This document shows, piece by piece, positions 37,907 through 63,305 of a stretch of DNA of 64,000 nt; within the stretch, counting starts at the first letter, position 1, and each line of letters opens with the position of its first letter. The notes under the pieces were generated by a model. It was not told where the DNA came from and searched no databases. It saw nothing but the letters and a program-made list of their open reading frames with translations. This DNA comes from Octopus sinensis (taxonomy: Eukaryota), in NCBI RefSeq assembly GCF_006345805.1, contig NC_043022.1, positions 17,112,001 through 17,176,000 of the forward strand, written 5' to 3'. Made by a program: the position numbers and the translations under genes.

Positions 37907-38086
37907 ATGGCTCTTTTAATTGGAATATTGTTAATGTGTGTTGGCGTGACTAAGTTGACCTTTGTTAATGCTGGGGTGGACATTGGTCAAACATCAGTCC
38001 AAGAAATCAGTGGACAGCGAGTAGAGGTGGCCACCACAGGAAGACTGACCGACATCATTTATTTAGATGTTTATTCTTCAATAAAG
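37907..38086 (+). CDS. Hedge/M15 gene exon 1 (signal peptide)
   Basis: [28 protein letters not shown]...YSSIK|gtgagt, 180 bp. Confidence 0.85.
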
Positions 38087-62000: not shown

Positions 62001-63305
62001 CAGACTCAACGTGAAAAAGAAGCCACGAAATTTAAAGAACGGCTGATCTCTGCTGCCGGCGCCAGTGCCATGGGTACCAGTGACATAATGGTGGACACCA
62101 GAAAATGTTTGGTTGACAATTGCGGTGGTTGTTCTGGATCAGGTAGACTTTCATTTGGTGTCCGAATTATTTTCACTTCTCAATCAAAGTAGCTCCTGGC
62201 ATCATTTTGTATTGCTCTGAAATTTCTTGTTCACTTAATATTTTATGACTTTTCTCAGGCATTGCATCATCATCATCATCATCATCATCCTTTAATGTCC
62301 CTTTTCCATGCTGGCATGGGTTGGAAGGCTTGATAGAAAGAGGCAAGTCATAAGACCACAACAAGCTTTGCTGTTTGCTTCGACAGGATTTCTGCAACTG
62401 GAGTCTGGTGCAGCCTTCTGGTTTGCCAGCCCTCATTGAAACTGTCCAACCCATGCCAGCATGGAAAGTGGACGTTGAACGATGATGATAAATGTATTTA
62501 CTGTGAAAATCTTTAAATATAGCCTGCACAAAGAGTTATTCGTCGAGGAGCGGTGCCTGCCATGCGTTGATAATAGGCAAATACCTTGAAACCTAGGTCC
62601 GTATGTGGCATCCGCTTCTTCGGGGAATGATCTCCCTTTGCAGGCTAGAGGACACCGTGATGGTGTCAGCCCTCCTGGTGACATTGATGATCGCCTGGGG
62701 CTAAATGCATCAGTAACACCCCCACCACCCTGCCCTGTCCCTAGCCACATTCAGATGGCTGATGTCCCTTATGTTATATATATATATATATATATATATA
62801 CATACATACATACACACACATACATACATACATATATATATATATATGTATGATGTATGTATGTATATATATATGTGTATGTATATATATATATATCATT
62901 TGCCATGTTGGACTGCTGAACTGTACAAGTTTTTCCATTCTCTCTCTGTTTATTTTCTCTTATTCCTTTCTGTTGAAAACTTTTCCATTTTATCCCCAAG
63001 CGCCAAACCAATACACCTGCCTGTTGTCCACACACCTGTCTTTGTCTTTTGTTTTCCTATAAATTCCAAACACACATATATATCTAGATATATACTTTCC
63101 TTTACAGGGACAGTGTGGTTGCGAAAGAGCCAAGCTTGCAGTCAGCTCCTGCGGACGTTCGTGAAGAAGGCCAGCATGCCTTTCCCCAACTTGCACAACA
63201 CCGTTGCATTCTTCAGCAGCACCAATGCCAACAGCTTGGTCCACCATTTGGCCTGTGAACAAGGCAGCATCTGTATTGAGACAATCCCCCTCTATGCGGT
63301 CATCG
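37907..63305 (+). CDS. Large secreted protein with two Hedge-like domains and a peptidase-M15A-like domain; 3'-incomplete, at least ~1300 aa
   Basis: Signal peptide exon, then phase-compatible GT-AG exons. Hedge-like motifs [44 protein letters not shown] and a second copy [32 protein letters not shown]; M15-like LSPNF..LDP..L.CLE..AYRS..N..GKAVE..LGIG..YVDLR. Two junctions (45732/46403 and 48228-49264) are not cleanly resolved. Confidence 0.85.
39817..40028 (+). CDS. Hedge/M15 gene exon 2
   Basis: cttag|[38 protein letters not shown]...RINVFMKKI|gtaagg, 212 bp, phase 0 to 2. Confidence 0.85.
40744..41046 (+). CDS. Hedge/M15 gene exon 3
   Basis: ataag|[11 protein letters not shown]...[13 protein letters not shown]|gtaagt, 303 bp; the only open frame is the one demanded by exon 2. 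Confidence 0.8.
41305..41812. repeat. Degenerate (TATG)n microsatellite, about 500 bp
   Basis: Direct reading; similar tracts at 51125-51270 and 61230-61480. Confidence 0.95.
42125..42185 (+). CDS. Hedge/M15 gene exon 4
   Basis: tgtag|[20 protein letters not shown]|gtaggg, 61 bp, phase 2 to 0. Confidence 0.65.
42440..42720 (+). mobile_element. Non-LTR retrotransposon ORF1-like remnant
   Basis: [14 protein letters not shown]...ISRG....LLFDTPEVA....PL....LLTYCGK / RTWVCGLPP resembles an RRM-like L1/Tx1 ORF1 N-terminus; disrupted. Confidence 0.4.
43858..44116 (+). CDS. Hedge/M15 gene exon 5
   Basis: ctcag|...|gtaagg, 259 bp; frame [12 protein letters not shown]...SAADYTT preferred on phase and codon-position G bias, but a second frame is also open. 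Confidence 0.75.
45602..45732 (+). CDS. Hedge/M15 gene exon 6
   Basis: ggcag|[43 protein letters not shown]|gttagt; 3' phase is off by 1 nt relative to exons 7-8. Confidence 0.6.
46403..46501 (+). CDS. Hedge/M15 gene exon 7
   Basis: tacag|[32 protein letters not shown]|gtaaat, 99 bp; frame fixed by exon 8. Confidence 0.7.
46682..46819 (+). CDS. Hedge/M15 gene exon 8
   Basis: cacag|[45 protein letters not shown]|gtaagt, 138 bp. Confidence 0.8.
47325..47590 (+). mobile_element. RTE-clade LINE RT C-terminal remnant
   Basis: [17 protein letters not shown] ... [19 protein letters not shown]...RWLD with frameshifts. Confidence 0.6.
47630..47850. mobile_element. piggyBac-type MITE, TTAA target duplication
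   Basis: TTAA|CCCTTTCGTTA ... TAACGAAAGGG|TTAA; decayed relative at about 55005-55205. Confidence 0.85.
48065..48228 (+). CDS. Hedge/M15 gene exon 9
   Basis: tgcag|[25 protein letters not shown]...[13 protein letters not shown]|gtaatt; an earlier same-phase donor (AATG|gtaaaa) is possible. Confidence 0.7.
48287..48467 (+). CDS. Hedge/M15 gene exon 10 (3' end uncertain)
   Basis: Strong acceptor ctcttttctctctcag, frame [35 protein letters not shown]; the only phase-2 donor found is the weak ATG|gtcaga. Confidence 0.45.
48740..49075. repeat. AT-rich minisatellite (CCCCTTATTATAAC-like units)
   Basis: Recurrent CCCC/TTATTATAA units with a longer internal duplication (CTGGTACCCCTTTATTAC twice). 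Confidence 0.8.
49264..49475 (+). CDS. Exon 11: Hedge-like domain 1, first part
   Basis: ttcag|[70 protein letters not shown]|gtaaga, 212 bp. Confidence 0.88.
49939..50022 (-). ncRNA. Minimal type-I hammerhead ribozyme motif (Penelope-type)
   Basis: Minus strand CTCAT-CTGATGA-TTAC[...]GTGA-GAAA-CAGCTGTA-ACGAG: intact core, 4-bp helix II, palindromic helix III, helix I 4 of 5 paired. Confidence 0.6.
51291..51659 (+). CDS. Exon 12: Hedge-like domain 1, second part plus acidic linker
   Basis: tgcag|[11 protein letters not shown]...[13 protein letters not shown]...[27 protein letters not shown]...MNAT|gtaaga, 369 bp. Confidence 0.9.
53151..53292 (+). CDS. Exon 13: start of Hedge-like domain 2
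   Basis: tgcag|[46 protein letters not shown]|gtgagt, 142 bp. Confidence 0.88.
53600..54042 (+). mobile_element. Internally deleted mariner remnant
   Basis: [23 protein letters not shown]...QDLLD...DENFLK (mariner linker region) and a TIR-like end CCGGATACTTATTGATCACAC. Confidence 0.7.
55430..55641 (+). CDS. Exon 14: Hedge-like domain 2
   Basis: tacag|[70 protein letters not shown]|gtgagt, 212 bp; same length and phase as exon 11. Confidence 0.88.
56210..56400 (-). mobile_element. RTE-like LINE C-terminal remnant
   Basis: [24 protein letters not shown] matches G...GKR.RGRP..RW.DNI. Confidence 0.65.
57668..57752 (+). CDS. Exon 15: Hedge-like domain 2
   Basis: tgcag|[27 protein letters not shown]|gtaagt, 85 bp; an in-frame upstream acceptor at 57631 also exists. 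Confidence 0.78.
57982..58733 (+). CDS. Exon 16: end of Hedge-like domain 2 plus M15A-like domain
   Basis: tgtag|[31 protein letters not shown]...[10 protein letters not shown]...[13 protein letters not shown]...AYRS...GKAVEL...[16 protein letters not shown]...AAHT|gtatgg, 752 bp open. Confidence 0.92.
58900..59320 (-). mobile_element. RTE-like LINE 3' end with C2H2 finger
   Basis: [21 protein letters not shown]; the 3' UTR segment CAGCCATGGTGGT.GTCT...CTGACCACCTCTT recurs at 63922-64000. Confidence 0.65.
60821..60920 (+). CDS. Exon 17
   Basis: cacag|[32 protein letters not shown]|gtaagt, 100 bp, phase 1 to 2. Confidence 0.82.
61952..62142 (+). CDS. Exon 18 (Cys-rich)
   Basis: tgtag|[17 protein letters not shown]...[14 protein letters not shown]|gtagac, 191 bp, phase 2 to 1. 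Confidence 0.85.
63108..63305 (+). CDS. Exon 19 (gene continues past the window)
   Basis: tacag|[14 protein letters not shown]...[20 protein letters not shown]|gtaaat, 198 bp; no stop codon reached. Confidence 0.82.

Follow-up and report, generated by a model that had tools for sequence, protein, structure and literature searches.

The gene LOC115224777 of Octopus sinensis encodes a molluscan paralogue of an older protein family whose core consists of an M15A-like domain, a Hedge domain, a second M15A-like domain and a C-terminal module. Its first 19 of 21 exons lie in the window analyzed here, a stretch of 64,000 nucleotides (nt) from RefSeq assembly GCF_006345805.1 (contig NC_043022.1, positions 17,112,001 to 17,176,000, forward strand); coordinates below are those of the window. 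The gene product is probably a secreted, noncatalytic binding scaffold belonging to this M15A/Hedge family, which is apparently undescribed. The protein begins with a signal peptide and an N-terminal region of ∼490 amino acids (aa); two successive Hedge-like domains (1 and 2) come next, then an M15A-type domain, and a Cys-rich module of ∼320 aa forms the C terminus. Hedge and M15A domains have a common fold. In the literature consulted, Hedge domains are described in Hedgehog (Hh), Hedgling and a few bacterial M15A-like proteins.

The plus-strand coding open reading frames were roughly concatenated and used as a query, which returned four proteins, the best of them NCBI “uncharacterized protein LOC115224777 [Octopus sinensis]” (1,427 aa; P0001). 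The spliced model from the ATG at 37907 to the exon end at 63305 (plus strand) encodes residues 1 to 1273 of P0001 with 100% identity (tblastn, then exact spliced search), so the outer coordinates of the initial annotation, made from the DNA alone, were exact. All introns are GT-AG, and the 19-exon model contains zero stop codons. P0001 ends 154 aa past exon 19, the last in the window, and the gene is single copy, exon 16 occurring once in the octopus genome (2.72 Gb). A pipeline label of “uncharacterized” or hedgehog-like had been predicted; databases use “uncharacterized” and “Hedgehog N-terminal signalling domain-containing,” labels that conceal the conserved multidomain architecture.

Two stretches of P0001 match Pfam HH_signal (PF01085; 53.3 bits; cut-off, 22.1), the better one at aa 799 to 898 in Hedge-like domain 2, and the double match recurs in the Argonauta and Batillaria orthologues. 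Against PDB sequences (phmmer), domain 1 aligns with Ihh/Dhh and domain 2 with Dhh/Shh over PLYTEGRGLRLTT...FDYVSYS...IEVFVKK. The domains match each other with an hhalign probability of 99.8% (E = 9e-30), and domain 2 arose from domain 1 by tandem duplication. Exon 10 codes for the first half of domain 1 and exon 13 for that of domain 2; both are 212 nt long, start in phase 2 and end just after a W-P/L-x motif; being equal in length, phase and end point, they indicate that the duplication copied the exon structure too. An AlphaFold2 (AF2) model was made for the Octopus bimaculoides orthologue (P0002; 93% identical to P0001, spanning P0001 aa 334 to 1427) from a 15-sequence alignment, with a mean pLDDT (predicted local distance difference test) of 71.9. 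Its 38 best PDB matches (Foldseek) are Shh, Ihh, Dhh and Hh N-domains (E = 4e-8 to 2e-6; template modelling score [TM], 0.7 to 0.87), with Shh-N matched at E = 4e-8 and TM 0.84. The two segments that the initial annotation had aligned with the Hedgehog signalling domain were therefore recovered by HH_signal, by hhalign between the domains and by Foldseek, and the Pfam and AF2/Foldseek checks proposed there matched the Hedge fold. An exact-motif search (DRLMT, HYEGR and other Hh motifs) in the three plus-strand frames gave zero matches, and the similarity to Hh is thus at profile level only. Pfam on single exon open reading frames gave one marginal HH_signal match only, and a six-frame HH_signal scan of the octopus genome recovered nothing but the genuine hedgehog gene, which lies on a different contig; since that scan missed the gene in the window, exon-by-exon scanning is too insensitive for LOC115224777. 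Micro-exon 14 (AKKPAQKT) has canonical splice sites and is inserted in a loop of Hedge-like domain 2; NCBI includes it in its models for both Octopus species.

In the third domain of the octopus protein (aa 940 to 1095), Pfam called no M15 family and gave only a trace of HH_signal (E = 0.14); the third domain of a bivalve orthologue weakly matches Peptidase_M15_2 (E = 0.0019). The domain is assigned as M15A-like, as the initial annotation had proposed, on three grounds. A hidden Markov model (HMM) of the domain matches a stand-alone secreted protein of 213 aa (P0133) at E = 3e-22, and P0133 has canonical SGYR...SRHLSGTAADI...IHIDHR motifs and a Pfam Peptidase_M15_3 match (PF08291; E = 1.5e-15). 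Among viral structures (BFVD, Foldseek), the best matches of the P0002 model are phage M15A peptidases, up to E = 1e-6. The motif layout LS.NF..(D/E)F ... YR(S/T) ... G.A.(D/E) ... G.G ... (H/Y)VD.R is that of M15A. Direct comparison of the M15A-type domain with the Hedge-like domains was not significant (hhalign; E = 0.03 to 0.08), and their kinship is accepted because of the known common fold, not from hhalign of the octopus domains. The “bacterial Hh” of Roelink 2018 is said to denote the M15A cell-wall DD-/LD-peptidases of phages and bacteria. By sequence, the third domain is homologous to M15A (Peptidase_M15_3), and its fold matches that of the phage enzymes; unlike them, it is embedded in a 1,427-aa secreted animal protein and carries F/E/Y in place of the zinc ligands, which makes catalysis unlikely.

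The zinc triad of these folds is H141/D148/H183 in Shh (mouse numbering) and H-x6-D ... H in M15A (S.H..G.A.D / H.D.R). Read from an alignment to the octopus's own hedgehog exon, the triad positions are F/Q/E in Hedge-like domain 1 and Y/R/E in domain 2; in the M15A-type domain they are F1024, E1031 and Y1074, the third within IYVDLRP. No octopus domain retains as many as two of these ligands. Among 113 aligned M15A-like domains, H/D/H is kept in five, none of which precedes the C-terminal module; the M15A-like domain before that module has a degenerate triad throughout the family (FEY, HRY, YRH, HQY and similar). Family B proteins (below) keep the histidine of SLHYEGRA in their Hedge domain and neither of the other two ligands. 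Judged by these residues, the LOC115224777 protein is a predicted pseudo-peptidase: with the triad replaced in all three domains, it should be no peptidase, and enzymatic roles for them are unlikely.

Secretion, also claimed initially, agrees with the hydrophobicity of P0001, whose sole strongly hydrophobic 19-residue window is at residues 1 to 20. The signal peptide, encoded in exon 1, comprises aa 1 to ∼23, with cleavage before GV, and the single hydrophobic window implies that P0001 has no transmembrane segment. The protein contains 18 N-x-S/T N-glycosylation sequons and 31 cysteines. The N-terminal region (aa 24 to 511, exons 1 to 9) is N-glycan rich, has no Pfam match and has no hhalign relation to the other domains of P0001; the best match of its profile in PDB, a bacterial beta-pore-forming toxin chain, is at chance level (E = 0.099). 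It had been described as beta rich and ∼550 aa long. Long beta strands are indeed present in the part that was modelled (P0002 residues 1 to 144, equivalent to P0001 aa 334 to 477), and the length is ∼490 aa. The long beta hairpins of the model fit many beta-rich folds.

What had been called a Cys-rich tail is Cys rich; it is in fact the N-terminal half of a larger conserved module (aa 1110 to 1427), which two exons past the window complete. The Cys pattern and an NPxP motif are conserved family-wide, and no invariant acidic residue is apparent. After hedgehog, the next-best PDB matches of the full P0002 model are CD38 structures. When the module was modelled by itself (AF2; pLDDT, 70; predicted template modelling score [pTM], 0.70), structures of CD38 and of the Aplysia ADP-ribosyl cyclase made up the whole of the top 50 PDB matches (E = 8e-6 to 3e-4; TM, 0.42 to 0.54; root mean square deviation [rmsd], 6 to 7 Å). 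A CD38/ADP-ribosyl cyclase-like predicted fold is thus a lead from modelling. A conserved dibasic site, [KR][KR]RS.E, is followed ∼15 residues on by NWExxWL in both animal subfamilies (families A and B, below). Site and terminal helix are common to molluscan, amphioxus, hemichordate and annelid members and are not in the sponge protein. In octopus, the site and C-terminal end (P0001 aa 1397 to 1427) read KLRR followed by SAEKSKARNERKIAAQNWEIDWLESL, with the predicted cut point between KLRR and SAE; the motif suggests a proprotein-convertase site.

An exhaustive phmmer search with P0002 returned 183 proteins at E ≤ 1e-3, which were grouped by source names and by a domain map from HMMs built on molluscan proteins. 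Family A (∼1,400 aa) has the octopus architecture of N-terminal region, Hedge, Hedge, M15A-like domain and C-terminal module and has been found so far in molluscs only (cephalopods, gastropods and bivalves). Family B (∼914 to 970 aa) consists of M15A-like, Hedge, M15A-like and the C-terminal module and occurs in bivalves, the annelid Owenia, amphioxus, hemichordates, starfish and a crinoid. This core architecture also stands at the C terminus of a 2,253-aa protein of the sponge Oscarella, with additional Trypsin and PLAT domains, and of a 2,145-aa choanoflagellate protein with additional C2 and Peptidase_M15_4 domains. Other choanoflagellate and metagenome proteins, of up to 4,308 aa, combine only M15A-like domains with the C-terminal module, one of them also with Peptidase_M23. 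In a tree of the C-terminal module, family A forms a clade (support, 100/100) on a long stem, apart from family B (90/79), and since bivalves also have family B, the A/B duplication is at least as old as the molluscs. The initial annotation was right that Hedge-type and M15A-type domains are stacked in one secreted protein; its restriction of that scaffold to lophotrochozoans fails, given that the core architecture also occurs in amphioxus, echinoderms, hemichordates, a sponge and choanoflagellates and that only the tandem-Hedge paralogue appears confined to molluscs. Searching the octopus genome with a bivalve family B query was uninformative as to a family B paralogue, the window's own, distantly related gene likewise not being returned. 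Literature searches of incomplete coverage, aimed at the loci and at Hedge-domain proteins outside Hh, Hedgling and Lophohog, yielded no description of the M15A/Hedge family.

As first proposed, the protein is neither Hedgehog nor Hedgling: a Hog/Hint domain is missing and the Hedge domains lie internally, and there is no von Willebrand factor A (VWA) domain, cadherin or transmembrane segment. Pfam on all 1,427 aa, including the exons past the window, called HH_signal only, with no Hint, VWA, cadherin or EGF match, and no Hint was found in the orthologues either. The octopus protein resembles Hedgehog in being secreted and in having two domains with the Hedge signature (DRLMT-, WPG.KL.V-, EGRA- and AGFD.V-type motifs) and the matching predicted fold. 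Unlike Hedgehog, it lacks the CGPG start as well as Hog/Hint, has lost the zinc triad, and carries its Hedge domains in duplicate, starting at aa ∼520 and ∼745 rather than right after the signal peptide. Intron positions differ too, the octopus Hh exon starting at RCKDK and the intron in LOC115224777 following WPN/WLQ. Both lipids of Hh, palmitoyl and cholesterol, matter for its signalling (PMC9695228). With no Hog/Hint autoprocessing domain there can be no cholesterol adduct, and the LOC115224777 product should not be a lipid-modified Hedgehog morphogen.

Hedgling is a Hedge domain without Hog, combined with VWA, cadherin/EGF repeats and a transmembrane helix (PMC2362128); it is known from cnidarians, sponges and choanoflagellates (PMC6027127) and not reported from bilaterians. 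The M15A/Hedge family resembles it in having a Hedge-type domain without Hog, an incomplete Hh/DD-peptidase (zinc-coordinating) motif, which Hedgling and Drosophila Hh also lack in complete form (PMC6027127), and a phyletic reach that predates animals. It differs in flanking Hedge with M15A-like domains, in the C-terminal module that follows and in its presence in bilaterians. Lophohog, of molluscs and an annelid, has a Hog domain, no Hedge and a unique N terminus (PMC9695228), and the octopus protein is its complement, being Hedge-like without Hog.

We propose that the protein would act outside the cell, binding rather than cleaving, and that its ligand would sit in what remains of the substrate clefts in the three inactive peptidase-fold domains. 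Of possible ligands, peptidoglycan-type stem peptides and matrix glycans are judged the most plausible. Protist relatives with Peptidase_M15_4 or Peptidase_M23 in the same polypeptide point to a family origin among cell-wall peptidases, which makes a peptidoglycan-type ligand plausible. A matrix ligand is the second option: the zinc-coordination center of Shh is reported to be linked to its association with extracellular matrix (PMC8052667), but that center is gone in the octopus protein. The C-terminal module, for which a CD38-like fold is predicted, may add a binding or oligomerization surface, and a proprotein convertase would cut off the last ∼26 residues between KLRR and SAE, before the conserved NWExxWL helix.

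Several points weigh against this proposal. About one-third of the protein, the N-terminal region, is without a domain assignment. The CD38-like assignment of the C-terminal module comes from moderate-confidence AF2 models (pLDDT, 70 to 72) with TM near 0.5; its profile has no match among PDB sequences at E ≤ 10, hhalign against human CD38 gives a probability of 0.24, and at E ≤ 1 the ADP-ribosyl cyclase family of Pfam matches 0 of 35 relatives, so that, with all sequence tests of the link negative, the fold is a lead and not a finding. Convertase cleavage is read from a motif alone, the identity of the ligand is a guess, and the LOC115224777 copy in the assembled individual might be truncated by a 2-nt insertion in the last exon.

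The alternative that holds up best, unlikely as we consider it, casts the protein as a diverged ligand or decoy of the Hedgehog type, whose Hedge-like domains would bind Patched, Ihog/Boc/Cdo or Hhip partners and modulate Hh signalling without lipids. The predicted Hedge-like fold does superpose on Shh-N, including Shh-N from PTCH1, HHIP, CDO/BOC and Ihog complexes (TM, 0.7 to 0.87), Drosophila Hh, which lacks the zinc triad, signals nonetheless (PMC6027127), and the SLHYEGRA motif is well preserved in family B. These points are outweighed by the placement of the Hedge domains >500 aa from the N terminus with neither a palmitoylation start (CGPG) nor a Hog-derived cholesterol adduct, by the loss of even the H141 position in octopus, by the presence of the family in choanoflagellates, which means that it predates animals, and by the normal hedgehog gene that the octopus retains elsewhere in its genome.

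We also think it improbable that the C-terminal module has ADP-ribosyl cyclase/NAD glycohydrolase activity and that the dead peptidase-fold domains would merely target it to a microbial or matrix surface. Such a role would fit the exclusive return of CD38 and Aplysia cyclase by the isolated module, the same matches with the full model, and an extracellular, Cys-rich character like that of those enzymes, with a Cys pattern kept across the family. The top 50 PDB matches of the fold predicted for the last ∼320 aa are confined to the ADP-ribosyl cyclase/CD38/BST1 family; the octopus module has no detectable sequence relationship to them and no conserved catalytic residues that could be identified. 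The superposition is loose (TM, ∼0.45 to 0.54; rmsd, 6 to 7 Å), the PDB profile, hhalign and Pfam comparisons given above came out negative, and an invariant acidic residue is missing. The strand that would be the counterpart of the catalytic-Glu strand of CD38 reads NVKFY in octopus, with Lys where many relatives have Glu, in a motif-level comparison that is not a validated alignment.

A decaying gene in O. sinensis, or a wrong gene model, is a third and very doubtful explanation; in that case, a frameshift in the last exon truncates the protein, and the NCBI flag “LOW QUALITY PROTEIN” denotes a pseudogene. In the last exon (locus L002, 4585 to 4865, ∼3.6 kb past the window end), the assembly does have two extra bases (GT; GTTGT) after ...IDNV, and the uncorrected frame stops 9 codons past the slip, which the NCBI model corrects. 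The frame on both sides of the slip is open and conserved up to the shared stop, a pattern typical of assembly or consensus error, and the slip probably accounts for the flag. Either an assembly error or a genuine allele may underlie the insertion. In the remaining 20 exons the frame is open and the splice sites are canonical, and the orthologues in O. bimaculoides (93% identity) and Argonauta (54%) are intact. Last, a zinc DD-/LD-peptidase still active, with peptidoglycan or matrix peptides as its substrates, for which the homology of the domains to M15A and Hh/DD-peptidase folds could be cited, is extremely improbable when no octopus domain keeps two of three zinc ligands and the triad is degenerate wherever an M15A-like domain precedes the C-terminal module.

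Beyond the scaffold proposed for octopus, the third-domain HMM also finds secreted proteins in which an intact-triad M15A domain is followed by LDLa and a hedgehog-type Hint domain, or Peptidase_M15_3 by Hint directly (P0137, P0146, P0101, P0191 and P0192). These M15A-(LDLa)-Hint proteins join a peptidase to Hog and so parallel Hedgehog. The genes for P0192 and P0137 are intronless and lie on long ENA contigs of eukaryote-like origin, with a neighboring-gene match to guanylate kinase on the P0192 contig and a weak one to spectrin on the P0137 contig. The stand-alone canonical M15A gene (P0133, L004 1 to 211) lies ∼2.8 kb upstream of the M15A-Hint gene for P0192. Their adjacency on the same contig suggests local duplication followed by fusion.

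Tentatively, and with more doubt than confidence, we suggest that, next to Hedgehog and Hedgling, the family makes up a third class of proteins with a Hedge domain, itself ancient, with Hedge between M15A-type domains and then a CD38-like module, reaching from choanoflagellates to amphioxus and molluscs. If so, then together with the M15A-Hint proteins it would mean that Hedge arose within a eukaryotic lineage of secreted proteins derived from cell-wall peptidases and that a peptidase was fused to Hog, in the manner of Hedgehog, on more than one occasion, an alternative to direct bacterial transfer of the Hedge domain into a cnidarian ancestor. The M15A/Hedge family adds another carrier of Hedge, in many bilaterians, a sponge and choanoflagellates, with Hedge-type and M15A-type domains in one polypeptide. 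It offers a testable handle on where the Hedge domain came from, on the role of the Hedge fold once zinc site and lipid modifications are lost, and on whether inactive folds of cell-wall peptidases have been put to new use by animals as modules for binding.

Table 1. Exons and domains of LOC115224777 (window coordinates unless a locus is named) and genes of M15A-Hint proteins
Feature	Position	Strand	Content and basis
Exon 1	37907-38086	+	Start codon, signal peptide, start of N-terminal region; tblastn 100% to P0001 aa 1-60; donor gtgagt
Exons 2-5	39817-40028, 40744-41046, 42125-42185, 43858-44116	+	N-terminal region; exact spliced model (exons 2-9, 39817..48241, together encode P0001 aa 61-511)
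Exons 6-9	45602-45732, 46428-46501, 46682-46819, 48065-48241	+	N-terminal region; exact spliced model
Exons 10, 11	49264-49475, 51291-51659	+	Hedge-like domain 1, aa ∼520-700
Exons 12, 13	53151-53292, 55430-55641	+	Hedge-like domain 2, part of aa ∼745-905
Exon 14 (24-nt micro-exon)	57023-57046	+	Hedge-like domain 2
Exon 15	57668-57752	+	Hedge-like domain 2
Exon 16	57982-58733	+	End of Hedge-like domain 2 (57982-58117), then M15A-type domain
M15A-type domain	58220-58687, inside exon 16	+	Peptidase_M15_3-like, aa 940-1095
Exons 17, 18, 19	60821-60920, 61952-62142, 63108-63305	+	Cys-rich first half of C-terminal module, aa 1111-1273
Exons 20, 21	65706-65896, 67594 to ∼67868 (extrapolated window coordinates; locus L002)	+	Rest of C-terminal module, past window end
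M15A-Hint genes, intronless	L004 3001-4311, L005 3001-4587		ENA assemblies ERZ25069810, ERZ25071859

Upstream of the gene, a short open frame at 6811 to 7062 (plus strand) resembles by eye exon 1 of a CYP3-type cytochrome P450; Pfam gave no match on this short piece. A weak tblastn match of 4575 to 4754 to the C terminus of the protein was rejected as spurious, because it falls in an interspersed repeat found at both 4569 to 4832 (plus strand) and 59875 to 60090 (plus strand, intron 16/17). On the minus strand, 4788 to 5831 holds a 347-aa open frame with a Pif1 helicase 2B domain (Pfam, E = 7e-17), broken by a poly-A/poly-T-rich insert, which is probably the remnant of a Helitron-type transposon. 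The introns of LOC115224777 are full of long CA/TG and TATG/ATAC-type microsatellites (38100 to 38350, 41211 to 41894, 46200 to 47100, 51100 to 51270, 54500 to 54720, 61200 to 61540 and others), which give rise to long artefactual open frames on both strands (HTHT, YIYI and CMYV runs).

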